In this document: positions 20,401 to 53,739 of the stretch, piece after piece
How positions within the stretch are numbered: the stretch's first letter is position 1
How the letters are laid out: each line of letters starts with the position of its first letter
Source of the DNA: Glycera tridactyla
Taxonomy: Eukaryota
Reading direction: 5' to 3'
DNA: 64,000 nucleotides
Assembly (NCBI GenBank): GCA_965644265.1
Contig: OZ286476.1
Span: forward strand, 20,026,001-20,090,000
The notes under the pieces: model-generated
The model's database searches: none
What the model was told of the DNA's origin: nothing
Seen by the model: the letters and a program-made list of their open reading frames with translations, nothing else
Translations under genes and position numbers: made by a program

Positions 20401-22200
20401 GGAAGGAGGATATCAGCCTCACTCAAACTTGGGCTTTGAGATTTCATCAAATTCTCTGTTGACACCAACTTGCGGCTATGAAAAGCTTGTAGAATCACAG
20501 GTTTTGATTCTTCTATCTCAAATATGCTACCTGATCTGGTAGCTAATGGTGTCAGTTGCAGTGAGTGAGTGGAATTCTTTATAACCTGTTATTGAAAAAA
20601 TATATGATAAAGTCCATGATCTTGCAGGGAATTCCTCCATATGCAGGACATATTGCTTCATATGTAGTACTGGTACCTGATATATAGTGCAAAGCCGAAA
20701 GGAGATCAAAAAGAATAGTGGTGTTTCAGCTCATCCTCAACAGATATGCATATTCTTATCTCATGTGTGCTGCTTTTGCGACTGCTCGTGCCTTGCGAAG
20801 CGCATGCGTTGAAGATTGTGGAGTGATTTAATTAACATATTTATTTTATCTTTCAGGTGGTTTGAGGCATGTGATATTTCAGCATCATTCTGTACTGTGA
20901 ATTTTCTGAAATAATTCAGATTATCCATCCAGGATCTTGGGTCCAGGAGGATTATGTAAAATGAGTATCTATAGATGGGTGAGAGGATATGCTGGCCCCT
21001 GTCTCGGTTCAGTTCATCCACATCTATTTCTCAGCTCCCTGGTTTAGTTGAGATATAATCATGTCCTTGTAATTTGACTTCGTATAGATAGTTTGCAGTA
21101 CAGAATGGTGAATCATACACTGTTTCGAGGTCTGTTGACTCCTGAAATGGCAGAAAAGATTAACTCAATTGTGGAATATGTATACTGAAGAAGGCTTCAT
21201 AGGGGCACTAAGTGATGATTTCACCACAAAATGTCTCGCATCTACTACAGGCATAAAGAAAAATACCCATAAAATACCACATTTGATTGATACAGTAAAA
21301 CAAAAAGTGGTCTCTCAAGACAGGTGGTCTCTCATTGAGGGTATTTTTGACTATGTCAAATAGAAAAGAGCCGATAAAGAGCGGTCTCCCATTAGAGGGT
21401 GGTCTCCCAAAAGAGGGGTCTCCCAAGACAGGTTTCACTGTATTATCAGATCTTCAGCATTCAAGAGTATCATTCAAAATTGTAGGAAACCAGATATATG
21501 CTGTAATATATAAAAAGTGATATGGTAACAGTCCTATGAGTATCTGATTTATCCACTTTCAAATCAATATTCATTTAGGATATCCCTGATGTGGCATATC
21601 TCTACTGAAACATATCAAGATATGTGGAAATTTCCCCACAAGATATTATGGATTAATCAGCACTGCCTAGTGTGTACCATTGAAAATATTGCTGATTGAT
21701 ATTCTTAGGCATTCATAAAGTTAGTCGTTACAAAAATTACAGAATTCTTATATGTGGATTCCAGTCAGAGTGAGAGGAAGAAATCTCACTTTTGTCTTAT
21801 CCTAGTGTTATTGGGATGAAAGACATTTCCACAACAGTTTCACCTTTTCCTGCCTTTTCAGTTATTTCAGCAGCTGATTCAAAGAGTTAATTAAATGTAA
21901 CCAAATGTGTGGTTGAACTTCATGATTGTACAAGCAGCATTCCGCGGTCTTCATCATTTAGATCTATAACGTATTCACCATGGGATATAGAGCCGCTGTT
22001 TTTTCTCAGACCTTGATTGATGATCTTTTCACTCTTTGACCAATGAAAACCACTGAGAACAACTTCCAGTGAATAATGGGCCAGAAAGGTAAAAATGTGA
22101 GCCACGGGCCGAGGCCCACCAGAAATCTGAAGCTCTGGGGCCATCCATTTCTTTAGTCTCATATAATCTAACTTTGGACCATAGAGATGTTGGGCTCTAC

Positions 22201-26400: not shown

Positions 26401-29400
26401 AGAAATCATCTGATTTCTTGTGGATTTGAACGAGGATCTCTGCCTAGCCTTTGAAGAAGCAAGCTGTCTATCTCCATGTGCCTATATTATTCCTTTATAT
26501 GCTCAGACACTGTCAGGGTTTCTTTTGGAGATTGATTTAGCTTATTTCATGATTGTGCTCAAAATCATCCAAGTTATGTGGTATGTGAGTTGATCCCTGT
26601 CTTGGTTTTCCACTACTGAGACTAGCGACTGTATCAGGTTCATTCTCTGAACAGCACATCCAAGGAAATATATTACAGTCGAAAGCCACATCATGCAATT
26701 GCTGGTCTATTTTGTAATTGATCAGCCATATCTCATTTGTACAAGGAAGCCAGGTGCCACCCAACCAATTTTGTGGAAGTAATAATGTTGTTTGGTGTGT
26801 GCTCAGTTCTGTGCATGTCTTTTACTGCATCTTATTCCCACCTTATCTGCATTCAATGTTTGTGCACTTCAGTGTTGAAGGATTTCATCTGGGTAATGCA
26901 AATGTGCAGGGTGTTGTATTCAAGGCAAGGGTGCAAAGTATCAAAGATTATGGGGAAGGAAATTCAAGAGTGTATTTTTCTGCACCAAAATGGGTGGTAC
27001 ATGTTGAGCATTTGGCCATCCTCGGCCAGTTTCCACTCTACTGAAAATGCTGAATTCAAGAATTTATCCAATGATATAATGAACTGAACCATTTCAGTCA
27101 TAAACACCAGAAATGGAAAAGATTCTGCTATTGTGATGGCGTAATTCATCGAAATAACAAAAAAAAAGAGCAGAAAATTCTACACAGTAGAGATGTAGAT
27201 AACACATATTTCTACTCCACAGCTGCTCTGTGTTTGAATTCCATCTCAGTGGCAACTCGTAAAAAGTAAATAATGTTTGGAATCGCATAATTTACTTTAT
27301 CAGGTGAAAGTTATCTTGGCTATGGTACTTGCTTATCATAAATATCGTCTCAGAACAGACTCATGTATCCATCCATTGACGAACTTCACGATTCTCAGTA
27401 ACTTGATTTTCAGTACCCTTTTTAGGGGTCAGGGATTTCAGTTCACTTTATCCCGCAATTGGGTCTATGGAAAACTACACTTTGGCTTGGTTCCCTGGCA
27501 CATAAATGGAAATCTTCTTGGTTCTGCACAAACAGTTTACGACTCATTTTTGACTTTGGTGTGTGTTGCATGTTTTTATTTGCTTGCATGTCCTCTCTGT
27601 GTGAATTACAGATGAGCAGAGACAACGTAAGCGAGAGCGTGAATTTTCCCTGTCAAAGCTACGAGAATTGCGTGAACGCAGTCCCCGAAAGTTGGAACCA
27701 GCATTGAGGTTGAAATTTGAGAAGACCAAAACAATTGCCTCCCCAGATGTTCAAGATGCTGGCAGTGTTAAAGTGGGAGTTGTCCCAAAAACAGTCCAAA
27801 AAGATGAGGAATTACCTCAGAAGAAGCAGGAAAAATCTTTCTCTGAGATAGAAGTTAGGTCAACCTCCTCGGTCTCATCTATAGAAGACACTGATCCCGT
27901 GGAGGAGGAGGTTGTGAGTGCTACTGAAGTGACTAAACCAAACTCCAATATTGACTTCTCCAACATCAAAATGACTGTGCCACTACAAGCACAGAGCATC
28001 TCAGTGGTTGAAACTTCCCATTCAGTAATTGATGATGACGCAAAGCAAGCAGTCGTTACACCAATCCAAGAGAGGAATCCTTTGGAGGTTACCATTAGTG
28101 AAGTTAAAACTATGAAAGAGCCAGTTGTGATACGTGCAAGATATCCAATTGATGATGGAGATGAATTACCGACACGTAAAAGAGAGAAAGTTGTGAAAAA
28201 GGTAGAATCAATAATCATGGCCAATGGTGAATCAGGGCCTAAACCCCCTTACAGGACATTAGTCGATATCAAATCTGATGATGTACCAAAGCCAGTGGTT
28301 CCAGAAGTGGAAGCAAAACCTCAGCGGAAGACGCGAATATGGTGGACAGAACTTGATGATGAGGAAAGTCGGCTTGCTCAAAATGCTCTCGAATCTTCAT
28401 CAGAAGTTCCTCCGAAGGAGATTCAAATTCCTGAGCAAAAACTGGAAGAGCCAGTGCCAGTTACAGCAGAGGAAATGCCATCGCAGTCTGAGGAAAATCA
28501 GCTGCTTCAATATATTGCCACGATCACCTCTACCGACTCATTCGAGACAGCTCTTTCTGAACAACTACAAGGTGATAAATTTGGACGCAAGCTATCTGAA
28601 TCAAGCTCAAGCACCTCAGAATCAAGTGATGGCGGAAGTTCAGTCATAGACACATCTGATATTGATTCCAAATACAAAATAAGTCAATTGGTGAAAGAGA
28701 AAACTGATGTCAAACGGGATGTTCTGTCACCAATCAAATCACCAGTGACAGAATCTGAATCTGAAGAGAGTATCAAAAGTGTGGAAATGAAAGAAATTCC
28801 CAAAAAAGACGAAGATCCTCTGTCTGATACTCAGACATCAGATCATACTCAGGATCATTACGATTCAACCGAAGATGTGAAAGATGTTGCACATCAGGAT
28901 GACCATGTTAGGGAAACAACTACTGATGATCAAGATCCGTCTCCAGACGAAGACGATCTTCGAGATACAGACAATAGTAGATTCGCTGATCAGTCAGCTG
29001 AAGCATTCTCATCAGATGATGATGAAGATGAAATATCGCAAGAATCGAAACCGATGACTCCGATTATTGTCGTGGAAGAGGAGTACAATGTTCATGCCAC
29101 ACCACATGGAGTACCGCCACTTGACCTTGAGCAGTTGGATAGTAGCGAGAACGGGTGGTCAACCAAGGACGATGATGAAGATGAGGAGCTGGAGCTGTTG
29201 AAAGAGGATGAGGATGATGATGATTTCACGGAGGAAGATCTCCCGCCTGTTGTTGGGCAACCCCCACCCTATGTCCCATCAGCAACTGAATCGGACGAAG
29301 ATGGTGAGGAGTATACGGAAACCGTCATAGAGAGCAATGTAACAGAGCAAGTTTACAATATGCAATCATCTGATGGGGAATGGACTAATGGTATTGCTCA

Positions 29401-32400
29401 ATATACACGCAAAGTAATAGACAAATATGACCAACAAATGCCTTCCCCCGGTGAGAATGGGATAAATCTTACAGAAACATCAATTGTCACCAATGAGATA
29501 CCATCTGAGATACCGCAGACCAACACTGTTACAGAGAGAGGGCGACATGCCATCATAACCAAAACAGAACCTAGTGTTTTGGAAACGATTAAAATTGAAG
29601 CTCACATCATCAGAGATGACAAAGCTTCACCAAAGTTTTCAGTTTTCAAATCTTCAACTGAAAAAGGATCAGAGGAAGCTGGTGATTATGAGGTCCAGAC
29701 ACGAGAGATCCATCCTGAGGAAGATGAGACCACATATGAAGTGAATGTCAGGCCCGAGACCCTCCTTGATTGGCAGCAACAACTCCAACGGGGCTCTCAC
29801 CTCAAATATGAAGCAGATAAAACCGTCAGAACAGAAGAAATGCAAATACTTGATGAGGTAACGGTTGAAACCAAGGTCAAGCAGGTCAAAACAATAAAGA
29901 TGGAGATGACGAATACAGGAGACTTTTCTGTTGAAGAAACCACAGAAGTTCAGACAGACACCGATATGTCTGAACACCGTCAGAGCAAAGAACGAGAACA
30001 AACTGTCATCCTCCACACCGTGGCTGATAAGTCAGAAGGTAGCCATCTTGACCTGCCCGAGATCATTCCAGCTCTCACTGGACGCAGTGATGCTTCAGAT
30101 TTTTCAGCGCGTAGTGACATTTCTGCACAGAGTGATCACAGTGGAGATCGATCATTCAGTAACCTTAGCAACCATGGTGCGTCACTAAGCAACCAGTCTG
30201 ACCACTCATCACTCAACAGCGAGAACGTCCCATTTGAGGAGTTCAAAACAATCATTGATGCATCTGATTCTTCTGAAGAGCCTTATGTGTGTATCGCAAT
30301 CAGTTCATATGACCCTGAGAATGCTGAGGTCATGTCACTACATGAAGGTGAAAAGGTCGAGGTACTCGACGATGTTCAAGATGACTGGTGGTATGTGCGG
30401 AAGCTATTTGACCAGCGGGAAGGATGGGTGCCGGGACAGTTCCTACGAGAACGCGACGTGTTTGAAAACATGGTGGACTCCCAGCTCAAGCAAGCTATAG
30501 ATACTCTGCCATCTCAATCAAGTAAGAACCTCCATAATGGATCCAATAATACATTTATAATGACAGCAGGAATAAGTTTTAGACAAGAAATCTCTGTAAT
30601 GTACATTTTTCATTGAAGCACAAGCACCACACTATCACAAGTGTTGTACAGTCCACTCTATCTATCTTCTGATCTATTTTTTCCTCCAATATTTCAAGAA
30701 TTAGGACTGCACAGGCTGTGGTGTAACTTTTCCTAAATTTCGGAAAAATTATTAGTGTTGCGCAGTAGAAATATCATCATAAGTCAAGTGTCTTAGTTTT
30801 ATTGTTTTATGGTCAAGGGCCCTACATTGGCCAAACTATTCAGGAGCAGGCTGGCCCCTGAGTTGATATTTTTGGTAGCCAATCAGTACATTGTGAATGA
30901 CAACATCTCAAAATTTCAGGCCCCTTGGTTTCTGACTTTTGAAATATGGTAGCCAGAGGGTAGATTTGGTAGCCATTGGCTACTCACAGGTAGCAAGATA
31001 AAGAGCCCTGTGGTTCATGTGAGACTATGCTCAAAGTCAAAATCCATCATCATATAATGAAATCCATCCATCCAATCAATGTTGATGGAAATTCTCGAAA
31101 ATCATCTTCATTCAAAAGTAACAAACGATAGAAAACTATTAGTATTATTAAGATACGAGGTTTATCCCTTGGCCTCCTGGATTGAAGAAACATTCAGCAT
31201 CAATTGATCAGTTAGTCAATCAATCAATCAATCAATCACTCAATCCTTGTCTTTAGCTCTTCATGTTAGGTTTCCATCCAGGATGGATCAAAAAGGTGAT
31301 GAGTGACGAGGGTCACAAGGAAAGTGGAGCTGAACTTGCTTTGATATATTAATCATTCAAATTTCTTGGCTCATGGTTCCTTTAATTGTGGAATATGTTG
31401 CACAGGGTTGAGGTTAGTGAGCAGTTGATTGCTTTGGCACTCTGGTTCTCAACAGATCCTTTTGTATCTCTATGGATGGTTCAGGTGTTTGAATATTGTC
31501 TCAGCACTCTATTCAAAAAGCATTTCAAATGTCATGTGCTTCTGAGTGTTTTGGAGATGGAACTATATCTTCTCAATCGAAGATCCAATGAGATAAGGAT
31601 TATATCTGTCAAAGGAAAGACCTTATAGATAAAATTATTTCATGTGATTAAAAACCATAGAGATTAGGTTTATTTCATGTTAATGGAAAACCATCTATAT
31701 AAGGATGATATCACATTTGAGGCATGTTTAAAGAAATAAGTGCAATTGTNNNNNNNNNNNNNNNNNNNNNNNNNNNNNNNNNNNNNNNNNNNNNNNNNNN
31801 NNNNNNNNNNNNNNNNNNNNNNNNNNNNNNNNNNNNNNNNNNNNNNNNNNNNNNNNNNNNNNNNNNNNNNNNNNNNNNNTGTTTGTGTGTGCATATTTAA
31901 ACCTTGTGAATACTAACATGTCTGTCTGTCCCCCGATCCTGTTATCCACAGAGGAAGATTTTGAGGGTGAACCGCTAGCCCCCGAGATCGGCCGGCCTCT
32001 TTCTGGCATGCATGCACCAGATGGCAGCGAGGTGCAGTTTGATTGCATTATCACCGGCAACCCCGCGCCAACCATCGCCTGGTTTCACGAGAGCTCTCTG
32101 ATCTCACCCGGGGACGATTTCATTCAGAGCTATGATGAAGAGAACAAAAAATGTACTCTTATTATCCGTGAAGTGTTCCCCGAAGACACTGGCCGCTATA
32201 CGGTTGTTGCGAAAAATCTTATGGGTACGGCAACCTGCTCTGCTGAGCTCATTGTCGAGGAAGGTGAGCGTAAATCTTGACTCTCACGAGTGTAATCTCA
32301 ATGGCAATCTCACAAATATCTACATTTAAAAAAATTGGAAGTTTTTCCCTCTGAGAGAAAGAGATTCACTGGGAATCTGGGTTCACCCATGGGAGGATTC

Positions 32401-34005
32401 CATGTTAATTCAGGTGAAATGAAAGTCTCGGTTTATTTGAATGCATGTTTTCCAGTTTGTGCTTATCATTGTTTAGATTTATTTAATCCATCTTGCATGG
32501 TGTGATTTTTTTAATGTGTGCTTGTAATTGTATTCCCTCCTGATATAATGGCTTTCTTAAGTGTTTGTTTTATGTGAACTTGAGAGTAGCATGGTTAGTG
32601 TTCCTTACCTTCTCAGGTATGAGTCCATGACCTTGGGACAATCATAAGAATTCACAAGATAGACCCTTGTAGTAATTCCACGATCAGGTCCACTATGTGA
32701 TGTCCCTATTCAAGTCCTTAGATATTGCTCATATGTTTGTGAATTAGTGTTGTGAAACTAGTTTCCCTCATTATCTATAAGCTAACTACTCAATATCATA
32801 TATATGTATAGTCATAGATTATTGATAAGTTGGTCTATGCTGTTGATATCTAGAATTTTACAGCTTTTTTATACCCCTGTTTTTTTCTCATGTTTTCTTG
32901 AATTGCTCAGCTGATGATGATTCATGTATTGTTCATTCACAATGAAAACTTTCTTACTCTATTTGTTAGTGTTAGGGAATAATATTAGGATAATGAGCAT
33001 CTGGACATATTTCAATTGATTTTGATATCATAATCAATGTTTAGTCAACATTTTGAAAAGAAAGATTTAATGTATGTGTGTTGACTGGTGTGGATATAGG
33101 AGTGGGAGATTTTGTATTGAATATGCTCGGAAAGCAGTCTCCTGTCTGCAGCAGGTCCTTTATCCCACTTGACAACCCTTCAGGTTCCCTATCATCTTGT
33201 GTTCAGGGTTTGTGAGAGTGATGCCTGCAGGGGAGAGAATATCCAGCTTTCATTAACCAGGAACACACGGCATACAATTATAATTGCGGTGTTTTTGGCT
33301 CAAGTAAAAGACAATATGGCTTATTTGTTGTTCTTCCTGTGATTTTTTTCAGCACCCGAGCAGCAGGTGGTGGAGGGTATGGCACCCCAGTTGGTGCAGA
33401 AACCTAAACCACAGGTCGTCAACGAGGGCGAGGATGTTACATTCGAATGTCGTCTCGTTGCTAACCCCCAACCAGAGGTTGGTCAATGTTTTATTGTTGC
33501 TTGACTGTTACTTGTGGATGATTATGTTTATCAAGCTGCCCTCATCTATTGCAAATCCATTAGATGCTTATTGTATGACAGCATTCATGATAGCCCTGAA
33601 AATGAACGTCTTATAATGGGTAGAACAACACATTTCAGTATACAGACAGAAAGCCAACACATTTTCATTGAATCTAANNNNNNNNNNNNNNNNNNNNNNN
33701 NNNNNNNNNNNNNNNNNNNNNNNNNNNNNNNNNNNNNNNNNNNNNNNNNNNNNNNNNNNNNNNNNNNNNNNNNNNNNNNNNNNNNNNNNNNNNNNNNNNN
33801 NNNNNNNNNNNNNNNNNNNNNNNNNNNNNNNNNNNNNNNNNNNNNNNNNNNNNNNNNNNNNNNNNNNNNNNNNNNNNNGTGAATTTCTTCCATGCTATTG
33901 TACATGGCTATCTAAGTATACACATGTATGCATGCACATGCATTTATACAGAAGTGTGTACAAGCGTATACATGCATGCATGGATATGCTCTCTGTCTGG
34001 CTCTT

Positions 34006-34117: not shown

Positions 34118-37100
34118 ACCACACACACACACACACACACACACCCCAGTTTTTCATGGCTTCTTTTTCATGCTTCAGATGCAATGGTGCAAGGAGGATC
34201 TGATTATCTTCACAACCGAAGGTCGTTACAAGGTCGAGGTGACACAGGATGTCCACATGTACACCGTAACCTTGATCATCTACAAGGTCACCCAGCAAGA
34301 TAGTGGAAATTACACTCTCACAGTCCGTAACGATTATGGTGAACTCAGAGCCAATGTGTCTCTTGCCCTTCACCGTAAGTTGAACATTTTATGTATTGAT
34401 TAATTCTCTTTACTTTGAATCCCATAAGTCATTACTCTGATTGAGAGAAATACAATGAAGTCTGCGCTCCTGATGCATTCACTTGTACTACATTTTGAGA
34501 TAACGCAGTCAGTTATATCATCAGTAGCACCATTTGTAGTTTTGTATGTAGGTAGAGGTGTTTCTGAGCTTACATTCATTTTCGACAAGCTTTCTTGTTC
34601 CTCATTACTCTGTGTTCAGGGCTTGTGAAAGTGATGCTCACATGGGACAGAGCATCCAGCTCTCGAATATCTGGAACATGCAGCATGCAATCAATCAATC
34701 AATCAATCAACCAATTAGTCAATTTCAACGAATCCTCGCCCCTACCTATATTTTCTCTGTATATTTTGCTGAAGTTACTGAAATTTCACTCCTGAAAAGT
34801 GCATCTTTCAATGGTGTTGTAAATCAGCTGGTTAATTCAGTGGCAAATGTCACCAAAGCCTTTTCCCCACAACCAATTCCATACTGGGCTTTTTGTAGAC
34901 CAAAATAGTATTGTCAAACCTGTATAAACCAGCCAGTCCCAGAAGGGCAGAGAGTGGTTGCTCAAGACATGTGAAGTTATTGTGAAATTATTCTAGCAGG
35001 AAATCAGAAGTTGTTACACATGGTTGCTCAATCCAAGTTCAACAGTAGTCTGTTATTTTTCCTTTTTTTTTTTGGGGGGGGGGGGGGACATTCATATTGC
35101 ACAATTCAATTACATGTGTTAGAAACACATTGAATCTTATATGTTTCTCTCTGATTTGCAGATGTTGAGAAGACAGTTGAGCTCCAAAAGTAAGTTATCA
35201 TTATTAGTTTTTTCTTCAAGTATATGCAATATATTGAATTTGTTCTGGTTTTGACTGTGTGCACAACACAACTTATAATTTTTGGTAAACTGCTCAACTT
35301 TTATGCGAATATTTATACTCGTTCACAAATAAAAGATCCATTACATGTATCCTCAAAAGAGTAGGGGATTAACCTCAGACAGAAATGCTTTTCTCTCACA
35401 GTATCACTCTTATAAAACAGTATAAATCTGGATTAAAATATCTGAATCAAAATCAGCTTAAAACTCTTAATTTTATGAACATTGATATCCCAACTCCCTT
35501 CCCTTTGCTGGAAGGTACATAAGGTTGAAAATGTATCATGTTCTCATATGAACTATCATTATGTGTTGTTAGTTCAGTTCATTTGCCTGGCATGCAAGGG
35601 CAGAGCCCAGGAAATGTTCAGCCTGCCTTTGTGGCTCAGTGGTGATGTACTGGGCCGGCGTGCGATGGGTCTGGGGTTCGAACACCAGTCCTACCATGCA
35701 GAAACGTTTCACCCTTCATCTTCGATCCTCCTTGGCAGGTGGTCTGATTTAGCCTACTCAAGTGCAGAAAGTGGACCTAAAACCTCAACATTTCCATTAC
35801 TGAAACATGAGATGCATACTGAAAAGATGCATAGAGGATTACAGTGGTAATGGCGTCAGTTTGAGCAGTTTACCAATGATCAAACCTAGCTTGTTACCAG
35901 AATGAATTCATATAGACATTACTGCCTGCTTTTAGATTGCTCCTTGCTTATGATATTGAGCCATATATTATGCTTTTGCATTATATTCACCAAATTGAGT
36001 CACTTAAATCACATGATGAGGATATGCCTTATCATTCAATCTATTACAGGTTTATATAACCCTGTCTGGATTGGAGGGATGTGAAGCATTACTCGGTCAA
36101 TCAAACAATCAATTCATAACAATGTATCTGATAATTGACCCATCCATTCAACCTAATAAAATCCTAGTATTTGGTGTCTTGGATGATATTGTAGAATATA
36201 TAAATGGTCTATCAGATGTACATTGTATTTACTGCTCGGCAATCATATATTTACCACTCTAGTATTTCACATTATGTTGTATACCTTTGTAATAATTCTC
36301 ACAAAATATCTGTTCCGAGGTATTATATGTCAGTGGGCCACCATCTCGCTGTGTTTATCCCACCAGCAATCACAGCCAGGTATCTCTGACCTGTAATAAA
36401 TGCATACCAAGAAATATCTATGTACAATGATTAAAAAAATTCATCACCATTGAATATCAAAAATGATTTTGTCGAATCATTAAAATGAAGATCAATATTT
36501 TGCTTGCATTAATTGCATGGTTTTGTTAGAAGTAGATTGTTTTGTTTCATTGTTGGGATTTGTATTTTGATGAGAATCATTCATGTATCTTTGTGAGCTT
36601 TTCTCTGCCTTTGCTCTCACAGTGTTCTACCAAAGACATCAATATATGTCTGTTATACTCTCTTAGTCAGTATGACAATTCTGCTAGCTTTTTAATTTTT
36701 CACTTAATGGAACAGGCTCGTATGATCCAATTCAGGCTGATCGCATTGGCATCTCAATCGAGCCCAGATAATGCACGATGGGGTACAGCCCCAAACAAAG
36801 TCTGAATACTGCTCTGCTTGGAAGCTACCTGTCTCCAGCGAGTAGCATATTAAGGGTAAATTGGAGGTTGTATATAGTACCACTATATGCATTGCAATCC
36901 CCCTATGACTTGCTACATGGGTGCATACCTATTTACTAGTCTCTGTTCCTAGTGTCGTGAGGATTTTGAATGGACCTCTCATGTACTTTGGTTATTGAGA
37001 AAATCAGCTTCAGTTGCATTCAACTGAATCTCAATTAAAACTTTTTCATCATTGATGATCGACTTACTATCATAAGATAATCCAAGATTCAGTGGTAAAA

Positions 37101-40100
37101 TAGTCTGAGGAGAGGATCGATAGAAATTGAATCACAACTTCTATCTGACATCCAGATGTTGGAAGGTGGAATAGAAATTGAATTACAACTTTTATCTGAC
37201 ATCCAGATGTTGAAAGGTGGAACACTGTTACAATCCTCACCAGCTTCTCTTATAATCACTCTCGCATTGACAGCACATTGCATGCTTTTCATCAGCATTC
37301 ATCATTATCTTAACCAATGACAGTCTTAACATTTTCATATTGCATGCATATCATTAACATACATTAAATCATGCATCTACTAAACCAATCAGGGACCCCT
37401 TTCTTCATGGAGCTACTTCAAAACTGTCAACTCTCTGCTCTGGTTTAAAAACTGACTGAATATGTAGCTGATAAATGTGTAATTTTCAAATTACCCTTTA
37501 TCAGGAGAAATGTGGATTCTCTCCGGAGTAATCGCTCACAAAAAGATTACCGAGGGATTCTGAAATACTCGGATGAAGCTCATGGAGGTGTTGGATATCG
37601 GACACAACAACGAGAGCAACAAAGACTTTTCAAATCCACAGATAAGGCAGAATATGATATGCCTTCTCAAAAAGTAGAAGATGGCGATTTTACCAGGATG
37701 TTGCATCGCAAAACTAAAACAAAGGAAGGCGTAAGATTTGAAACAGAACAAAAGGACTTTCGTTCAATTTTGAAAAAGTCCAAACCAACAAAGGAGGGTG
37801 TCATTCATGGCACAGAACAGAAAGACTTTCGAAGTCACCTCACGCATCCAACAAAAACCAAAGAGGGCATCCGTCATGAAACGGAGCAACTCGACTTTCG
37901 TGATCAGTTGAAGAATCCAATAGATACTAAAGTGGGTGAGACTTTTGAGTCAAAACAGAAGGACTTCCGTGGAGTACTTAAGGGGTTTGGTAAAACGCAG
38001 AGCAAGTAAGTACAACGCACAAAGAAGTCTGATTGTCATAGTAACCGAATCACAGATACACACTTGCACTTACATTGGTGCTTACACTCTTTGCAGTAGT
38101 TTTTCACTTTTAGTAATTTGCATGCTTTAGTATTCATAATTTAGCTTCAGATGTAGATTGATTTTTGCATGGTTTGAAGTTCACCTTACCTGGATTGAAA
38201 TCAATATTCATGGATTTGTTTATAAAAAACGGATTTCTCAAATTCCCAGTTGCTATATAGCCCATGCGGTTTTTGCTCACCTACTGTAGATATCTGTGAT
38301 GCAATGAATCTTGAGGTGCTTATGAATTCTAGTATCACACATCATATACAAATTGAGTGGGAACATATTCAAAGCAATATGGTATATATTTGGCTTTGGG
38401 ATTTTGTTTTCATTTAAGACACCTCAATCTATCTTCATATTGGTGTTCAAAGATGCATCCAGGGAGATTTCATGTCACTATCGGTGTATTGGATGCATCT
38501 TGGGAGTGCAGAATTTTTATTTTGGGGTACTCGAAGGCATCATATTCATATTTCACTATGTTGGTTTGATTGGAAGGATGTGGTAGTCAAACCTGTTCTA
38601 ATTAGCTGTCCTTGGGAATGGCAAAAAAAGGCACACTGTGAAAAGAACCTCTGGTGGGAACTCTAATTGTGACTCCTTGACCAGTGGTCAAGGAATTTTA
38701 TGCAGGAACAAGGTCCCTACTCTGTCAAATTTTGGGACAACCGCAATCCGAGATGTAACCCTGTGTTTGGATGGTATAGTGTTGTGATTTATGAATTCCC
38801 TGAAACTGCATTACTTTTTGAATTCAGCCTCTCCCCGAAAAGCAAAAACCAACAACTTGAGCCTGATCACGAAAAACGGATGATTTAAAAAAAAATGTGA
38901 TTTGTACATTTCAATGGTGCATTGTGAAACATAGTTTCATTCTAACGTTGAATCATGTCCGAGTTGTGGATTTCTTTCGTTGTGTTTAAGTGTTCATTTT
39001 TCCCTCTGTTTAGGACTGAGATGACAACAACGCAGATTATTCAGGGTCCAACTGACCAGGTTGTCCACGAAGGTGAGGCAGCGTATTTCTCTTGTGTTGT
39101 GCATGGTGTGCCTCCACCGCATGTTGCATGGTATTTTGAAGGCGACCCCATCGGCGACAGCGACATCTATCGGTTCGACGAGCATCCAGAAGAGGGTCGC
39201 TACACGCTGCACATCCCGGAGGCATTCCCCGAGGATGCCGGGGAGTATACTGTGCGCGTTCAGAATGAGCATGGTTCTCGTGAAGCATCCGCTACGCTCA
39301 CCGTCGAGGGTGAGTGTGTGGTCTTAGCTGTAACCCTTCCCCAAATGATTACAGAAAAACCCATCTTAGGAGACCAGCCCAAACGCTATGTACAAGCTGT
39401 CTCTCAAGACCGGTGGTCTCTCATTGGAGGTATACTGACCATACCGATAGAAAATAAGTAGCAGTGTCTCTGAAGAGGGCAGTTTCCCAAAACAGGGGTC
39501 TCTCAAAACAGGTTCCACTGTACCTACAGTATTATATGAAATTCAAATGATAGTGGAGTGTCAGTGGAGTAGAAATCACCATTCGATTTTCATGAAATTC
39601 CATCCTCTATTGGAGGTCCTCAAGAAGGAATCAAGAATTCTTTCATACCATATATAGGATACGTAACAGACCGTAAAATACTGGAAAAAATGCCAATAAC
39701 ATTTCTTTTACAAACTCATCCATGTGTGATGTGATGAGAAATGGTAATGAGCTGAGGCTCACCCAAAAACTTGATTTGATTTCCATTCTTGATACAGTAA
39801 AACCTGTCTTGGGAGACCGCCCCAAATGCCAACGAAAGGTGGTCTCTCAAGACAGGTGGTCTCTCATTAGAGGTATATTTGACTATGTCAATTAGAGAAG
39901 AGCCGATAAAGAGTGGTCTCCCATTAGAGGGTGGTCTCCCAAAAGAGGGGTCTCCCAAGACAGGTTTCACTGTAGTATCAAAAACAGGGGGGAAAATTCC
40001 TTCCGTGTTTCTTGGAGGTAGGTCAAGGTGAGCTGACGGTCACATCCATTGGCAACACTTTTACTTCCTCATCATCTTGTGCTCAGGGTTTGTGAGAGTG

Positions 40101-43100
40101 ATGCCTGCAAGGGACAGATCATCCAGCTCTCACAGACCCGGAATTTCATCCCACAAGAAGGAATCAGGAATTCTTTCATACCATACCCATATATGGTCAC
40201 CCTCATATTTCCCATATATAGGATAAGTAACACACAGCAAAATACTGGGAAAATGGCAAAATCCTATGGGTTGATGGATGCCATTGTATTCTACTCAATC
40301 AATCAATCAATCAATCAATCATCCATCTTTCGTATACCCATTAGCAGATGTAATCTCTCTGAAAAATTGGTCACATTGGGAGTAGATGACATGGCTGGAT
40401 GGAAATATTCTACAATTATCCTACAATATTAACAGAGGTTGATTTATTTTATGAGACTCAGTCCTCAGTGAAGGATTTTTCATGATGTGATCAAGTAAGT
40501 TGAAGTAAGATATCTATGCGTTGTAGAATCCCGATTCTTGTTGTTGTCCATGCATGTTTCCCTCGTACGTATTGAAGTGTTACTGGCACCTACCTCATGC
40601 AATGATATGTGTGAAAGCAATTTTATTTCAATTCATTCTTCAAACTAGTAATTTTAGCATGTTGACTTGCTTATAATCAAGAAATTTCTTTGGAGTGTGA
40701 AATTCGACTGAACATGACCATCCAAATCTGCATGTGTGTCGTTATGTGTAGATAAACTGGCATGTATAGTACGTCCAAATGTTTATCTGTTTCTTGATTC
40801 AGTATTGTAGGTTAGACTCCCTTTGCTTGGTGTACCTTACCTTTTAATTGAATTATTTCTTGTGATACAAATAATCCTGAATTTGTCACATCAAATCTCT
40901 ATTTAGCAGATCTATTGAGAATCAAATAATGTTCTAATACTGGACAGATCCTGTCTGCACTTCTATTAGTCCAAGCTATGATTTGGTCCATCTCGTATTT
41001 ATAACATTGCACATGTTCTTTTCTACTTGAGAAAATGGATGATAGACCTCTTTCCCACCAGGGGTGTTGCAGTCATTTAGAATCATAATGATATGACTTC
41101 ATGATCTAATTTACCCCTGCAATTTCCAAGGCCATTAAGATACCTTTCAGTTTAGAAACAATTCTCTCATGAACTACACCATCTATGAACTCCAAATTTG
41201 TCTGACACCTAGAGGGATAAAAATTCCCAGGAGCATTTTCCAGATGTGCAAAATATTTCTTGTCTATCTTCACATCTGCACTTGCACTGATTTATTTACT
41301 ATATTCATTGTTTATTCTTACAAACATTTTATATGGCCGTATTCTCAATACTTTTTTGGACAGATCACCGTGAATCAAATCAAATCAAAAGTTAGGAGCT
41401 ATCAATTCGCATCTAAGCTCTCCTTGAATGAATATTAACAGTTTTCGCTAAGATACTCTAGAAATAAATCCATGTCTATTTCATGGATGAGGTTAATGAT
41501 TGTTGTTTTATCTCATTTCAGAGCTGTTTGCGGAAACCACAACTGAGGTGATTGGTCACCAACAAGAGGAAGCAGCTGTCAAGATTCAGGCGGCGTTCCG
41601 CGGAATGCAGGCTCGTGAGAAAGTGAAGGTCATGAAGGCCGAACATGAGCAGGTCAGAGACTCGGGCCACAAGGTCACAAAAACAACACCCGCACCGTTT
41701 GAGTTGTTATACCAGCATGTTTCACCCGTTTACGATTCCTCAATGCATGATGGGGAATTCAGCGAGGATGGAGTCGAGGTGGATGACTTACCGTCACCAC
41801 CACCACTTCCTCCTGACGATTTCACTCTGCCCTGCATGACTGACGTTGATTTCCCACCACCACCTCCCAGTCTTGACCAAGTTCTCCAGGAGGTCATCTC
41901 GCCATCTAGTGAGGAATCGCTGACATCATTCAATGAACATAACCAGCAGAGCAGGACAGATCCTAAGTCTTTAGGTTTACCTGATAAATGCAGCACAAAT
42001 CAGCTACAGAAAGAGAGGGAGAATGTGATGTTACCTGAACAGACTCTTGGAATCAGTAGTGAGTCGGATGAGGGTGGTGTATACATGGACATGTCAGGCA
42101 CCTATATGATGCCAGTGAGAATGGAGCACAGGACTGAGATTCACCGAGTAGCCTTGATACCAACCACTCCTGATTCAGAGGTACGATAGTCAACATTAAA
42201 ACGGCATCCAAACTATAAATATATTAAAAAGCACGTACAACCATGAATATCCAAACTCTGTGCCTTGTGCTGAAAGGCACAAAACAGATGAAAAAAGCAC
42301 ATACAGCAATTTATAATGTGCCCAAAAGCGACATACAACTGATTGTACACGGATAAGATGACAGTTTTTGGCTCATAATATGTTTTAAGGCCCATACAGT
42401 TCCCTGAATTGGGAAATTTCTGCATCAAAACGATAGCTCATTTATGAGAGGGAAACAAGCTCAGGAATATGAGACATTTGGACATGCCTCACAGCATCTC
42501 ATAGAAAATTTGATTGGATTTTGCTCTCAGATCACCTAATCAACTGTCCCAGATGTTTACGACTATATTAGGAAACCTGCGACAACACTCACCCTACATG
42601 ACCACCTACACTTGGAGACCTCATCTGCAGGGCAGGTTCTTTTTCTGAGATAGTGAAATTTACCCCCAAGATGACATTTAGGGAGGTCTCTTGTTGCAAG
42701 TTGCAAGTTTTCAATTTTCCTAACGAGATAGTCTGAGACCATGTCTTTTTGACAAAACGTGGCTGTTATATTGGAATTCGATCTAGGTGAATGATTCAAG
42801 TTCTTCACATGGATTTTCACTTTTCAATCCTGTATTGTGTGATTTCCTCACATTTGCTCTTTGCTTTTGCATGAATACATTTATACAGTCGAACCTCCTC
42901 TAAAGACCACCCTGAACTGCGACCATGGTACCATTTTCTACAGTAAATGACCTCTCTATAAAGACCACCTCCCCATAAAGGCCACTTTTTGGTGCGACCG
43001 AAGGCAGTCTTCATAGGGAGGTTCGACTGTATGTTTGTTTTTCCTTTTGACTCATTCATGGCTGTGATAAGTGATCAACATGAACTGTGGAAATCATTTG

Positions 43101-46100
43101 AACCCAGAACCATTCTGGAAACAAATTTACCATGTTCAGACTAGCTTCAACATGGCATTTTTGATGTCCTCTGCAAATTTCAGGCACAAAAGTTGCCCTA
43201 AAGATGGATTAGAAATAGAGATTCAAATTTCGGAATGAGTAATAGAGCTGAATTTTGGTATTTGTCACTTTTTATCAGTTACTTCAGCTATGCTAAGAGT
43301 GGTTGAGAAATTGCAGCATTTGAATGAGTCCTGCATGCAATTGGTTTGTGGTTTGTTTATTTCAGTTTGTGCATGTTGGTGATGATGACGAAAAGGTGGT
43401 GCTTCCGGAAGCCATTGTGGATTCTGGGAGTCAGACTGATCCCTCTGACGATGAACACCATTACGAGAACTCCCCTCCAGCCTTTCATGATAGACTCACA
43501 ACCTTAATGAACCGTCCAAAACTTATCTCTGGATTTTCCATTGAATCTGATGTATCAGCTGTCTCGACAAATACATACGAATCGTTTGCATCTGGGCCTG
43601 TCAAAGATTCAGAAGAAAGTGCATCTGCAATTGATCTCAGCGATGAACGAATACAAGACTTTGATGACTTTGCCATTGAAACTTCTGGCGATGTATACGA
43701 AGATATACCGTCTGATATTATAGATTCTCATATTGTGCAAAACGAAACCCCGCCTGAAATTCCACCCAGATCTGTCAACAGTGTGTCTATAACTGATGAA
43801 GAAAAACTCAAAAATAAAGAAATATTGGAAGAAAGAGAAGCAGAGGCAGACTCTGATAGTGACAGTGATATTAGTAGTCTCTATGAGCATATCAATGCAG
43901 CACGACAGCAAATGCAACGCCAGGAGTCTTTCCAACCACTCATCAAAATATCTAGCCCAGCTGACGACACACCCTCTGATACCTCAAAAGAATCTTCGCA
44001 AGAGGATTTTTTGGAGACGCATGAGGAAGAAGATGCAGCCAGTTCATATGGTTCTGTAGTTACCGTAGTGGAAAAGACAGTTGTTGACCTCAACAAAGAA
44101 TCTGATTATGTTAATGTTGATTTTGTGAACAATGTAAAAAAGCCTCCATCAGAAACAAACAGTCATGAATCTTCAGAGGATGATTACCTGGAGCCTATTA
44201 GCTCTGATAGTTCTCAAAATTTGGATGAAAGTGAGCTGTACGAGCCGGTGAATTTATCGGATGTAGATCTGTGGCATATTGCTGATCTGCTAGTCTCAGA
44301 AGCTATGAGATCAGCTTTGGAAGAGTATCGCAACGCAATGCCACACTTACTGAAGGATTCATTGAATGTTGATATAAAATTACACTATGATGACGAAGAG
44401 GGGGACTATGTGGAAATAGTAGATAAGCCTGATGATGGGTTCTGTAAGAATGAAGCAGATCCCGACTATATCGATATAATAACTCAAGATGAATTTGTCT
44501 CAACGATGCATAGGGATAGGAATGATCCGGATTATATTGAAATAATCAGTAAGGACGAGTTTCCTTCAAAACATTTATCACAATTGCTATCTTGTGGTGA
44601 TGAAACGAAGTTGGATGAGCCTTTGAAAGATGACAGTCAGACACTGGATATCATAACTCCTGTCCAATCGCAGAAAATCTTCCTCACCCAAAGAGGAGTA
44701 ACTGAGATGCATGCTGGGAAGAATATTGCAGCATGGGAGGTGGCTGAAAAGATTGTTAACATCGCTACGGAGAATGCATTGTATGAATTTTCATCCCACC
44801 GGGTAAGATCCTGCATGTTCTGACATTCCTGCTTGCATTTTTCTGCCTTTGTCTTGACACAAAATCCATCCCTCACTATTTTCTGTCCTCAAATCTTGAC
44901 ACACTCCTGCTTTGACATAGATGTGAAATTGTGTTTAATCCCTATTTACACATGTATACTTGGAAGAGAATTGTATTCACATGCACATGCACCCAATATT
45001 TTGCTCACAAATACACACGCACAAGAAAAAAATAGTTATGTACAGATATTTTGAGGATGGGTGAGTTGCAGTTAGCAATCTAGTAAATTTGGTTGCTGAT
45101 TAGGGAGAATCAATATTTACACATGAATGAAAAACCACATGCTGTTCTCAAAATAATGGTCATTTCCAGTATCATGATACTCTCTCAATCTGCCAGTATT
45201 TCATGAATTGTCATGTGCATTGAAATAATACACAGTACTTTGTTTTACACAGTAATTGTTTTAATGTCTTCTCAGCCCAAGCTGGATCATTTAAAACAGA
45301 GAAAATGAGTCAATTCTCAAATATTGTTTGAACAATATTCAGATGAGCAAGCCAAGCCCCATTCATCGGTGTCACATGGAAAACAGGATTTTATGGTGTG
45401 ATCAGACTCAGTGATTTGTATTGGGTGTATCACAAATTCTCTCTTCGATGCTTAACCGAGAGGTGTGTCTGAACTGTTAGCAACTTCCACTTGACAACCT
45501 TTGTGGCTGTCTTATCTCATGCATGCTATGACTCCAGCCAACCACGCAACCTGAATCAGTTGATTCTTGTTACAGGGCATTTCATATTTGCATTTTGGTA
45601 ATGAACTATTTATCAGGGTTAACTTTTATATTAACATTTGAGGACTGATGTTTTCAGGTGCCGGGTGAAGCGCCGTTCTTCGTCACAGTTCCTGCTCCAA
45701 TCAGTGTAATTGCTGGTGACACCGCTGTCATTGAGGCGACAATTGGTGGATCGCCGCGTCCAAACGTCACCTGGTTACATCACAACATGGAACTGCCGAT
45801 TAGCGAGCGCTACTTGTAAGTACAACTTTCAATCTCATCCTGTATTACATTATCAAAATATCCCAAAATATTCAAGCAATATGGTCCTCATCCCTTAACT
45901 GACACCTATGTGTATATTCATTCTCATGTGGAATGTATCAATTTTACTTTTGTCTCCTTTATTCTTGTAAATGATCCCCCAACTACCAATATAATGCGAT
46001 ATTCAAGTGTTTGTATTTCCATCTTTACCTGGAATGTATCGATTTTACTTTTATGTCTGTTATAATAGTAAATGATTATCAAGCTAAATGTAATATCATA

Positions 46101-47958
46101 TTTTAAGTGTTTGACCCACACTCTTGACCTATTCAAGTATTTTATCACCTTCCCCACCTCTTGGTCCTTGTTGGGAGATCCAGCTAGATATTATGTGAAA
46201 TATTTGAGTGTTTTACCCACACTCTTGACCTTTTCAAATATTTCACCACCTTCCCCACCTCCTGGTCCTTGTTGGAAGACCCAGTCCTATGAGTTTGAAG
46301 CCTTACCTTCTTTAAACGTCAGTGTCAAATGAATCTGTCAAGTACATGTATATAAAATTAAGTAAAATCAGTATGTAATTGATAAATAGCTGCTTTGAGT
46401 TGATATATATTGATTTCAAATATACTGTAGAGATGTCCTGATGATCAGATAAGATAATGCAAATTGTATGATGACTTGTAGGTTTAGCCTGGGCCCCGAA
46501 CCCAGCTTCCAAGTCCTCAGGTAATGGGGATATCAAAGTGTGGATGTGTTCTTCACAATGCATATATCACAAATGCTTAGCTCAGAATGAATATCTTATG
46601 TTCTGTAGTCATAATATTGTAGGAGCTTATTTGCTTATACTGCCACATAGTCAGTATGAGCTAGTTGTTGTTGAATAGCAAAGCTTGACATTGTTTCTGT
46701 AGATATGCATCATTTATTTGATGGCTAATTGTTTGCACAATATATCAAATTTTATGATTTTTGATATTTTTATCGGTGACTTAATGGTCATCAGAAATTT
46801 CATCAGCTAAATTTCCCAAAATGATCAAATGAGGAAATCATGAGATTTTTCTGTATTCACTCAATTGAAATATTGGTTGACCATATATCTAATCAGTCAT
46901 TCAATATTTTCAGTCACTTGTAATCTACTATGGATTGAAGCAATGTAAAATACCACTTAGTTATTCAATTCATCGATCACTTCTTGATGTTATTCACAAA
47001 AGCAGTGATCCTATATATTCTCCAACGACAACCGCCAAAATCGGGTGGAGATCGGGGGTTGGAGATTGTGCCGATCTCCAACGCTGTGCGACGAGCCTAG
47101 TTTTCTGCATCGCCCCTGGGTGGCGCTTTATGTATTCGCCCGACCTACGATTTTTCGAATGTGAAGACGTTTCACACAATTATACCATTTCTGTCAGGAA
47201 TATGGAGGATATAGATGAACGAATTTGATGAGAAATCAGTAGATATAATTTCCTTTCGTTATAACTCATGCCTCGGTCATTTCCTCGAATGAAAAAAGAT
47301 TGAAATGTCACACATATATAATGATCTGTGAGTGTTCATGACCCTAAAATAGAAACCATTTGGACGCTGGCTGAAGCTTTGAAATCGAACAAATTCTTCA
47401 TAGAATACACACGTCAAACTCAATCTTTATTTTGATAATAGTTACACAAAGCCAGCTCCCGCCATTTTGTTCAATAATACTGTTATCGATGTCTGGGCTA
47501 TTTATTTCCATTATACAAGTCGTTGGAGAAAAACAAGAACCAATGAACGTGGGCGATCGTCACATCTCCAACTTGGCAGCCGCCAGCAGCGTCCGTCACT
47601 CGGCCTGCGGCCTCGTGACGGACGCCGCTGGCGGCTGCCTCGTTGGAGATTGTGCCGATCGCCCACGCTCATTGGTTCTTGTTATAATCATTCAATTTAT
47701 CTTGACTGCTGAATTAGCACAAATTTTGCTGTACATACAGATTTTGCACAAATTTTTCTTTCTGTTTATCAATTGTATGCTAGCCTTGGAAGTATGTACA
47801 GATATTGAAATTTTGCATCCCAATCTGTACACTGATAATGATATACATGTATTTCTAAAAATCAAAAAGATTATATGTTGCATGTCACCATATCGAGCTT
47901 GATCACATCAGGCACATTTTTACCTCGTCTCAACGAAGTTGAGGGGAGGTATTGCGGT

Positions 47959-48012
<54 letters not shown>

Positions 48013-51000: not shown

Positions 51001-53739
51001 TAGGGGGTTAGTTTCAGGAAATTTGGTCAGGTTTCAGGAAATTTTGTCTTAATGCACTTGCATCACTGAAAATGCCGTTGATGGGTCCATCAAGGTCAAT
51101 TTGAGGCATGTAGGGATTTACCAGAATAGTCAGCTACTTTAAGTTGACGTCCTCTCTGGTTCCCCATCATCTTGTGTTCAGGGATTGTGTGAGTGATGCT
51201 TGCAAGGAACTGAGCATGTAAGTCCCATAGATCAAGAATGCACAGTATACATTATAATTTGGGTTGATTCATGCCAGCTAACACAATCTCAATCGACCAA
51301 CCAACATCCGGTAATGGCAGAGCTGTACTGTGTTATGCGATGTTACATGTTTTGCATGTCTTGTTCAAACGATTTGTGTCTGTGACTCAATAATGATATG
51401 ATTTTTGTGTGTATTGTCAACATTTTCCATCGTGCATATCATCCAACATTTTCAGAAACTCCCCAAATGTCAACTCTTATTTGTGTTAATAATATACAGT
51501 ATAATGAGCACAATTATCATGAAAATATAGGACATCATTCCATGATTAATATTCATGGAGGAGCATTCAAAGGGGAAATGAGACAATTACCAGACAGAAA
51601 TCCATCTTGGCCCCATTTTTTCCAGTTATAGGCTCGAGATCCCGCCATATTTTTGGCTACATCTACATCGTTGCAGCTTTCATTGACTGGTGCAGTATTC
51701 TGTGAAATTATTAAGGATCAGGAATGTCTGCTCAACATTGTCAACATTATTGTTGGGAAATCTTGCTTGATGTCTCCTATTCAAAGGAAACAAATAAGGG
51801 ATATCCTATGATCATTTTGCAGTAATGATTGGGGAAAAATGCTTTCTCCACGGCATATGTAAATCCATTGCTTTTTCCATGACATCTGTCAATCGACTTT
51901 TTATCAAGATTCTTCATGTAGGTGTGGCTTTGCACAAATATGCGCAGTTCAGATACAGTACAATTTTGTACTAAGCATGACTTTTATTATGCAATTACAT
52001 TGTACTTGTTCGAGGCGACATCTCTTCATATTTCCCATCCAAGTATTTATCACTATGCTCGACCTGCAGTAAGCAAGAACTTGTTCTAAGTGCAGATATG
52101 CCATCATTAGATTCACTCTAATCATGAAGAGTAGGTAGAGGTGTGTCTGAACTGTCAGCTACTTTTATTTGACACCTTTGAGGTCCCCATCATCTTGTGA
52201 TCAGGGTTTGTGAGAATTATGTCTGCAAGGGACAGAACATCTAGCTTTCATTGACCAGGAACACATGGCATACATAATCCTGTGGGTTGATACAGGCCGT
52301 TAAACCTCAAACAAGCAAACAAACAAGCCTATTGATTTCTTTGTATCCGTGCTTGGAAGAATTACATCCGTGTTTGCTTTCACTGTACTTAGATGTTCGA
52401 CACTCACTTACCTGTTTTGTTTTGTTTTTTGTTCTGCAGCTCAACTTACACAGAAGAGATGACAGTTTCACTCACAGTTCACAATGTCACCCTCGAGGAT
52501 CAAGGCGACTACACAATCCGACTCTTGAATGACTTCGGAATGTCGGAGTATACTGTCACTCTGACGATCGACGTTGAGGCGCCAGCATTCATCATGCCAC
52601 TGCATGACGTCGAGATCACACTCAGCCAGACCGTAACTCTGGAGTGCACATTCGCTGGACGTCCCAAGCCTGAAATCAAGTGGACAATCTTTGGTATGGA
52701 AATTATCCAGTCGGAGAAATACATCATTGAAATCGAGGAATACACGACGCGATTACATATTACGAGTGTCACGCTGGATGACACGGAAATGACGTATACT
52801 TGTATCGCTCGCAACCCCGGTGGCCAAGCGGAGACAAGTGCTCATCTCATCCGTCCACAAGGTTTGTTAACGAGTTGCCGTTCTGAGTTGGGTACGCAAT
52901 GGCCCGTTACCCCATGCATGTTATGCATTTAGTGGACCCATCCCATTGATCAAAAAGAGCTTGCATGTTTAGGACTGTTACACCCATTCTTGCAACTTAT
53001 TTCCCATGCAGTTTGACTACTTGTGCATATTTGTGTAATTCTACCAAGACTTAGTTGTGCTTGTGTGACCCTCTGGCTTCCATATTTTCTGGATGTCAGA
53101 TACTGCATGAAGCAGCTCTTTTAACATGAAGATGCTTGCCTAAACTGAAATATGTCAAAATTTATGAGCTGTTGTAAATACTGCCTGCTTTCTGTTGGAT
53201 ATATGCAGATTTCAACAAATTAACAAGTATAATTTGCCCACTGTTCCATTCGATTTCATACAAAAAATCACGTTAGATTCATGAAAAACAAATTTTGATT
53301 GTACAGCTACTCAATATATGGTATTACCTCTGCTGTAAGTCCATCTCCTATATTTGAGATGAACAATGGCGTATCCTCACTTTCGGGTTATGTTAGTAAG
53401 AAATTATCATTTTACTACCTTATCCCATAAGGAAATGAAATCAAATAAGAAACTATGTTACCCTACAATTATGTCAGTCAAGAGGATGTGGAGCATTCCT
53501 ATATTCTATGCCTTTCAACCAAAGAATTCATGATCATGCAAAACATTTCCATCATGGGAATATTGATGAAACCTCATGAGTTATGCTCAGCATTAGATCA
53601 GACCTCATATTGAATCGAATCTTGCGAAGGAATGTATTTTCCAACTGGGTGTTGTACACATTGTAAATCCCTGACCTGTACGCTTACATGTTTCTCATAC
53701 AGGGTTGCATCCAGAGGGACACTAGGGCCATGATGCCAC

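Follow-up and report, generated by a model that had tools for sequence, protein, structure and literature searches.

Introduction

Tandem DFRxxL motifs are described from vertebrate smooth-muscle and non-muscle myosin light-chain kinase (MLCK, encoded by MYLK), where they bind F-actin with high affinity, three motifs reaching saturation when each kinase is matched by three actin monomers; actin binding drops when the motifs are mutated, and five of them, 28–29 amino acids apart, suffice for targeting to stress fibres (PMC2196421, PMC2185581). Long and short isoforms of MLCK differ in motif number, the long isoform having five (PMC2185581). Full-text literature searches for DFRXXL or DXRXXL retrieved papers on vertebrate MLCK only, besides one reporting that MLCK-1 of Caenorhabditis elegans is without the motif (PMC6232974). 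Here, we describe an array of DFRxxL motifs that occupies a single exon of a titin-like gene in the annelid Glycera tridactyla. The gene lies across a stretch of 64,000 nucleotides (contig OZ286476.1 of assembly GCA_965644265.1, positions 20,026,001 to 20,090,000 of the forward strand), hereafter the window, and all coordinates refer to this stretch.

Other giant sarcomeric proteins have periodic or disordered segments that lie along F-actin, such as the Ig-linker modules of kettin/Sallimus and the SDxxYK repeats of nebulin, and the spring and anchor parts of giant sarcomeric genes are commonly exon-skipped. The array described here has no sequence relationship to nebulin (units of ~35 residues), kettin (an Ig domain plus a 35-residue linker), or the titin PEVK segment, and to our knowledge no DFRxxL motif has been reported in kettin/Sallimus, titin PEVK, or nebulin. 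The PEVK segment is itself a thin-filament-binding part of a giant muscle protein (PMC12295887). Within a known motif family, what is new is the titin-like giant host, the 23-residue period, and the packaging of the whole array as a skippable exon. We consider it fairly probable that this exon is a genuine coding part of the titin-like gene, of ancient conservation and optional in splicing, whose product would be a disordered, 167-residue linker of MLCK type that tethers the filament to actin.

A DFRxxL array on a single exon

The array is encoded on the + strand by an exon at 37505–38005 (501 nucleotides), delimited by its open frame and splice sites; a Pfam scan of the exon matched no family. 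The exon comprises one nucleotide that finishes a split codon, 166 codons, and two nucleotides of the next split codon. Its acceptor reads tttatcAG/G (AG at 37503–37504), and its donor has the consensus form CAA/GTAAGT (GT at 38006–38007). It contains two variant motifs, DYRGIL (37545–37562) and DFTRML (37686–37703), followed by four canonical ones: DFRSIL (37755–37772) and DFRSHL (37824–37841), both preceded by TEQK; DFRDQL (37893–37910), preceded by TEQL; and DFRGVL (37962–37979), preceded by SKQK. In DFTRML, T replaces R, and the annelid Owenia fusiformis has DFTSQL in the equivalent position. All six motifs share one frame, and the five from DFTRML to DFRGVL follow one another at an exact period of 69 nucleotides (23 residues). 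Between DYRGIL and DFTRML probably sits a decayed repeat copy, EQQ-RLFKST (~37614–37640), in which, as read from the translation, the EQ prefix is retained and the DFRxxL core is gone. An initial annotation made from the DNA letters had listed the six motifs, their 69-nucleotide steps, and a basic context, all of which held true (K+R 37 against D+E 27 in the exon peptide); it had given the exon as 37545–37979, which is correct as the span of the motifs and too narrow for the exon itself.

The array is not a chance cluster: when the residues of the exon were shuffled 100,000 times, just 5 shuffles produced two or more DF[RT]xxL motifs, a frequency that rules out this explanation. Mononucleotide shuffles of the window gave on average 1.35 scattered DFRxxL per six-frame translation, and the six-frame translation of the actual 64-kb window has none outside the exon. 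The conserved unit exceeds the hexamer and spans 23 residues, E-[TS]-[EK]-Q-x-D-F-R-x-x-L-x5-T-K-x-G-x-x-[HF]. At the DNA level, the 69-nucleotide units are mutually only 39–61% identical, a divergence that rules out a recent tandem duplication, and Tandem Repeats Finder reported no repeat in the exon because the units are too diverged. Both observations indicate an old array that has been preserved at the motif level.

Homology to the MLCK repeats

We searched for relatives of the exon in two directions. A word-index search with the exon alone yielded four short open reading frames (ORFs) with EQxDFRxxL repeats, which together with the exon formed a five-sequence profile; relatives in a titin-like context have a motif period of 23–24 residues. 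When this profile was searched with HMMER against 1.84 billion representative proteins (E ≤ 1e-3), 105 matches were obtained. Among them were the DFRxxL regions of smooth-muscle MLCK from Varanus komodoensis (residues 862–959; E = 7.9e-12) and of a 1920-residue lamprey protein with MLCK architecture (residues 876–976; E = 1.1e-9), as well as frog and fish MLCK fragments. The matches also included four spiralian or unplaced proteins that are central below: Patella caerulea KAK6166183.1 (P0093; residues 667–777), Lottia gigantea XP_009049556.1 (LOTGIDRAFT_173546, P0059; DFRxxL region 253–315), Owenia fusiformis CAH1803275.1 (P0029, partial; 722–778), and UniParc UPI00065B97E4 (P0032, 3654 residues; 2893–2992). 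The likeness to vertebrate MLCK goes beyond the hexamer, since the lizard protein has AEQIDFRDIL and PQQVDFRSLL and the lamprey protein AEQKDFRSVL.

As a non-circular control, a second profile, made up solely of MLCK repeat regions from vertebrates, was run over the window's 1119 ORFs of 30 residues or more. The DFRxxL exon was the sole significant ORF (E = 1.5e-11), and the next best had an E value of 2.5. These profile searches, significant in both directions, show homology between the exon repeats and those with which smooth-muscle and non-muscle MLCK bind actin. The basic, disordered setting between Ig domains, the regular tandem arrangement, and the (E)Q-x prefix before the D-F-R-x-x-L core are likewise common to vertebrate MYLK and the exon.

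The Patella protein, which is of MLCK type (seven Ig, DFRxxL region, Ig, Fn3, kinase, Ig), carries DFRxxL motifs, and the motif is thus not confined to vertebrates. One of the matches (P0010), which comes from a Logan contig, is a smooth-muscle MLCK fragment of mammalian type. In addition, DFRxxL arrays of 6–9 copies were seen in otherwise domain-free, acidic or serine-rich proteins (P0008, P0016, P0017, and P0005), and use of the module may extend to protein families beyond MLCK and the titin-like giants. A profile search of the PDB found no solved relative of the DFRxxL repeat.

The host gene

To place the exon in its gene, we scanned the open frames of the window with Pfam and compared the window exons one by one, by BLAST, with the retrieved proteins. 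The order Ig-Ig-DFRxxL-Ig-IQ-Ig-Ig proved strictly collinear with Lottia XP_009049556.1, Owenia CAH1803275.1, and P0032. The first I-set Ig exon (31960–32268) has its positional best matches in these three models, at 41–44% identity. The second Ig, whose second half lies on an exon at 34177–34374 (start at 34177 or 34179), is matched at 29–44%, weakly in that the alignments are partial. The DFRxxL repeats follow in all three. The I-set Ig exon after the repeats (39014–39309; Pfam E = 2.5e-24) is 46–54% identical to its counterparts, the Ig that follows the repeats in Owenia giving the 54%, and its closest PDB chains are titin Ig domains. An IQ calmodulin-binding motif comes one Ig after the repeats, in an open frame at 41500–42189 (frame limits; the exon ends may differ), and is 62–71% identical over 24–29 residues. 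The Ig-Ig stretch that follows is 30–38% identical; an I-set Ig exon lies at 52393–52932. Hence, judged by sequence and position, the window gene is collinear with these non-kinase gene models and is not an MLCK orthologue; Lottia XP_009049556.1, Owenia CAH1803275.1, and P0032 are probably its orthologues. All three are hypothetical database proteins, none of them annotated or described. They share the domain order and the 23–24-residue period with the window gene and differ from it in having fewer motifs (3–4) and a first motif directly after the Ig domain (..NKTxEExTDFRDQL).

Further relatives agree with this placement. P0003 has, in its gene table, an SH3 exon, an Ig, an Ig, and a DFRxxL exon in the same order as the window. 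In P0001, encoded on a contig of GCA_022702835.1 (locus L002), the DFRxxL exon is 312 nucleotides long with a phase equal to that of the window exon, and the Ig exon behind it closely resembles 39014–39309. At L002 1175–1393, an apparent fifth motif, EQVDFRDVL, has a small exon of its own that lies between the DFRxxL exon proper and the Ig exon; in the window, no additional motif exon of this kind was found at 38006–39013.

The rival reading, that the window is a portion of the MLCK (MYLK) gene of the worm, as a very long isoform, and that the repeats are simply its ordinary actin-binding region, seems improbable to us. It draws on the existence of a spiralian MLCK-type protein with DFRxxL motifs in Patella, on the Ig domains found on either side of the repeats in vertebrate long MLCK, on the affiliation of titin-family kinases with the MLCK branch, and on the fact that the gene extends past the window, which leaves room for a distant kinase. 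However, MLCK-type proteins continue as Ig-(Ig)-Fn3-kinase right after the repeats, with motif periods of 26–30 residues and without an IQ motif. The window instead has Ig, IQ, an acidic exon of 499 residues, and Ig-Ig after the repeats, and Pfam found no Fn3 or kinase domain in the window, including the 26 kb downstream of the DFRxxL exon; the full MLCK succession of Ig-Ig-Fn3-kinase-telokin Ig is thus absent there. Positional matches of the flanking Ig domains were limited to the Lottia, Owenia, and P0032 models, whereas matches to MLCKs were weaker (30–40%) and fell on non-equivalent Ig domains. Upstream, moreover, the window has domain-free repeat exons of 3446 and 875 residues plus a 982-residue exon ending in an SH3 domain. 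We therefore rejected MLCK orthology on the non-equivalent Ig matches, the missing Fn3 and kinase, the shorter period, and the presence of IQ.

The two gene contexts also differ in the array itself. The motif period is 23–24 residues in the titin-like block and 26–30 residues in MLCK-type proteins; the spacing in the exon is as regular as in the MLCK array, with a different value (exactly 23 against 28–29 residues). Because the literature gives 28–29 residues for MLCK (PMC2185581), close to the ~28 assumed in the initial annotation, the 23-residue period is a genuine difference. In vertebrate MYLK, the host is an Ig-Fn3-kinase-telokin protein rather than a giant titin-like Ig-Ig-DFRxxL-Ig-IQ gene, and the Patella protein likewise offers a paralogous context, with a kinase, no IQ motif, and irregular spacing of 29–64 residues. 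P0004 (ENA locus L001) is MLCK-like as well, with the order Ig ... DFRxxL-Ig ... Fn3 and 26–30-residue spacing. At L001 (8539–8898 and 9974–10735), the Ig exon ahead of the array finishes with one additional DFRAVL, and the main array shares one exon with the start of the next Ig domain; compared with the separate exon in the window, this indicates that the packaging of the array differs between the gene types. Taken together, spacing and collinearity separate the two contexts, and spiralians thus carry the motif in two genes, MLCK and a titin-like giant. The proposals of the initial annotation in this respect, namely a repeat of MLCK type in a titin-like protein with no kinase in the window, have stood up to the forward and reciprocal profile searches, which link the exon to one particular part of vertebrate smooth-muscle MLCK, its actin-binding DFRxxL region, and to the finding of I-set Ig, SH3, IQ, and giant domain-free repeat exons without Fn3 or kinase. 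It had also asked for the motif in other invertebrate proteins, and the motifs are indeed kept in the non-kinase Ig-Ig-DFRxxL-Ig-IQ models of Lottia, Owenia, and P0032.

Splicing of the exon

Contigs from three sequencing runs of one study matched the window; we treat the runs as RNA because their contigs show GT..AG joints. Joints from 34374 to 35162 and from 35189 to 39014 were present in all three runs at a depth of 18–22. They define a microexon of 28 nucleotides (35162–35189, + strand; linker H-VEKTVELQ-K), which is joined directly to the Ig exon at 39014, and the main transcript therefore skips the DFRxxL exon. Since the microexon ends with two nucleotides of a split codon, it can be joined in frame to either 37505 or 39014. 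In fact, the three possible joins (microexon to 37505, microexon to 39014, and 38005 to 39014) are all in frame, each giving K at the split codon, and the DFRxxL exon, with 501 nucleotides, a length divisible by three, and equal phase at both ends, has the form of a cassette exon. In vertebrate MYLK, the number of motifs varies by isoform, the long and short forms arising from alternative promoters, whereas here the whole array is one skippable exon. The counterpart of the microexon residues VEKTVELQ in Lottia and P0032 is the linker ..NKTxEEKT, which stands immediately ahead of the first DFRxxL motif.

Depth over the DFRxxL exon was zero in two of the three runs. The third run (X1) had a single contig of 393 nucleotides over the exon (37622–38014; depth 5.9, two mismatches), and a contig of 151 nucleotides with a depth of 2.4 lay inside the intron (38449–38599). 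The exon (393 of 501 nucleotides) was covered more densely than unique sequence in the 3.8-kb intron. This denser cover, the intact frame and splice sites, and the in-line repeats in annotated relatives argue that the exon is used somewhere, and its inclusion may be regulated. The proposal of the initial annotation that the exon is a switchable module holds for its phase, its length, and its skipping in three runs; no junction showing inclusion was seen.

These data bear on two rival readings. One takes the exon for a relic that no mature mRNA contains, the low coverage being unspliced precursor. The zero exon depth in two of three runs, with flanking exons at 18–22, would fit this, as would the passage of the third-run contig beyond the donor and the second low-depth contig in the intron. 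A relic, however, would hardly be expected to retain an intact 166-codon frame, consensus sequences at both splice sites, and four perfect motifs with the extended EQ..TK.G unit while the DNA of the units has diverged to 39–61% identity; the denser cover of the exon relative to the unique intron and the in-line repeats of annotated relatives speak against it too, and we judge this reading to be quite improbable. The other holds that the exon serves as an alternative last exon, in which read-through of the donor leads to K-stop (TAA at 38007–38009) and a truncated isoform ending in the array. The contig at 37622–38014 does span the donor, and read-through does stop immediately, but the stop is an automatic by-product of the phase in which the GTAAGT donor stands, and the L002 orthologue of the exon likewise gives E-stop. 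In addition, neither AATAAA nor ATTAAA occurs in 38006–39013, and coverage ends 9 nucleotides past the donor. We rejected this candidate, which we hold to be very improbable indeed.

A possible actin tether

We modelled the exon peptide with AlphaFold2 from a 12-row alignment. The model is predicted to be disordered (mean predicted local distance difference test score 59, predicted template-modelling score 0.14), and the only structured elements in it are helices of one turn, one on each FRxxL, at residues 64–66, 85–88 (DFRSIL), 109–112 (DFRSHL), 131–134 (DFRDQL), and 154–160 (DFRGVL). Such a model suits a chain of short linear motifs, which would fold on binding.

Our preferred reading, an optional tether between the titin-like filament and actin, would work as follows. 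The exon would supply a basic, disordered linker between two Ig domains with four canonical, two variant, and one decayed copy of EQxDFRxxL. Each motif would fold into a one-turn helix on contact and dock on one actin protomer, such that the array would lie along ~5–6 successive protomers and the thin filament would serve as the anchor for this segment of the titin-like filament. When the exon is skipped, the two Ig domains would be joined by the 9-residue microexon linker alone and the tether would be absent. Splicing would in this way set the state of the segment, a free spring or spacer on the one hand and an actin-fastened segment on the other. F-actin binding by the worm array is suggested here by its homology to the MLCK repeats, and the stoichiometry and any physiological effect would follow from the same analogy. 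Calmodulin control via the conserved IQ motif one Ig downstream is an idea that this arrangement raises.

Several points weigh against this reading. Two of the six motifs, DYRGIL and DFTRML, deviate from DFRxxL. The period is shorter than in MLCK, and only near-complete extension of the 17-residue spacers between hexamers would bring a motif to the next protomer, ~55 Å away on the same long-pitch strand by our estimate; the geometry is thus possible and tighter than in MLCK. Actin binding has been established for vertebrate MLCK repeats, and no array with a 23-residue period is among them. The match list of the five-sequence profile contains false positives, P0022 and P0069 being C2H2 zinc-finger proteins, and low-scoring matches are therefore not acceptable as family members. 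On the side of expression, the contigs come from three runs of a single study without tissue labels, an inclusion junction at 37505 or 38005 is absent from them, and the one contig over the exon is possibly unprocessed RNA because it extends 9 nucleotides beyond the donor.

The period also enters into the most serious rival, in which the exon is a true relative of the MLCK repeats whose ligand is something other than F-actin, such as calmodulin, myosin, or a Z-disc or dense-body protein, or which acts only as a charged, flexible spacer. A period of 23 rather than 28–29 residues, the disordered and basic nature of the segment, the conserved IQ motif nearby, and the occurrence of DFRxxL arrays in Ig-free, unannotated proteins (P0008, P0016, and P0017) would all be compatible with it. 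Nevertheless, the Q-x-D-F-R-x-x-L residues that are invariant across annelid, mollusc, and vertebrate include the very core that mutagenesis has tied to actin binding (PMC2196421, PMC2185581), and residues in a mere spacer would not stay invariant over such distances. We thus regard a different ligand or a spacer role as rather unlikely, and favour a tether to actin.

Molluscan MLCK-type proteins retain the motif array, which also stands at a fixed site in a separate titin-like gene of annelids and molluscs, and this dates the motif before the protostome–deuterostome split. The 23-residue array is also a natural second spacing with which the binding of one motif per actin protomer can be tested, and it suggests a simple means by which invertebrate muscle could shift a titin-like filament from a free to a thin-filament-bound state and back. 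Much more tentatively, EQxDFRxxL might be an ancient bilaterian thin-filament-docking module that predates the split between MLCK and the titin-like proteins and was kept in spiralians as a splicing-controlled, possibly calmodulin-modulated clutch. If so, the clutch would turn a stretch of elastic filament from a free spring into an actin-tethered one, offering a way to tune passive stiffness or catch-like holding in obliquely striated or smooth invertebrate muscle.

Neighbouring features

The remaining features of the gene lie on the same strand (+) as the DFRxxL exon. Upstream are two domain-free exons, one of 3446 residues built of ~92-residue repeats and one of 875 residues with Q/E-rich repeats, and the 982-residue exon (27668–30616) that ends in an SH3 domain identified by Pfam and recurs in the SH3-Ig-Ig-DFRxxL order of P0003. 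Five I-set matches stand among these large exons on one strand, in keeping with a titin-like gene. By sequence, the SH3 domain (30260–30472) is closest in the PDB to those of p47phox (NCF1) and Fyn (E = 1.6e-15), and muscle-protein SH3 domains are not its closest match. Because no DH or PH exons follow the SH3 domain, the gene is not organised here in the manner of obscurin/UNC-89. As for the Ig domain at 34177, its upstream half may be located within or close to a run of N at ~33668–33880; the exon with its second half is covered by RNA contigs, as is the Ig exon after the repeats, where contigs end at 39309. Within 41500–42189, the IQ motif reads AAVKIQAAFRGMQAREKVK and is followed by a proline-rich stretch (PSPPPLPP, PPPPPS), and the 499-residue acidic exon downstream occupies an open frame at 43324–44823.

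Interspersed repeats occur in the introns at 39722–40100 and 35543–35940, where the summed depth of RNA contigs reached 35,000–48,000 and 1,300–4,250, respectively; many contigs matched them at ~90% identity. On the minus strand, the ORFs 39716–39970 and 21208–21438 share the initial peptide MKPVLGDPSFGRPPSNGRPLFIGS. The repeats at 39722–40100, 35543–35940, and 21208–21438 are probably copies of an abundant, transcribed mobile element.

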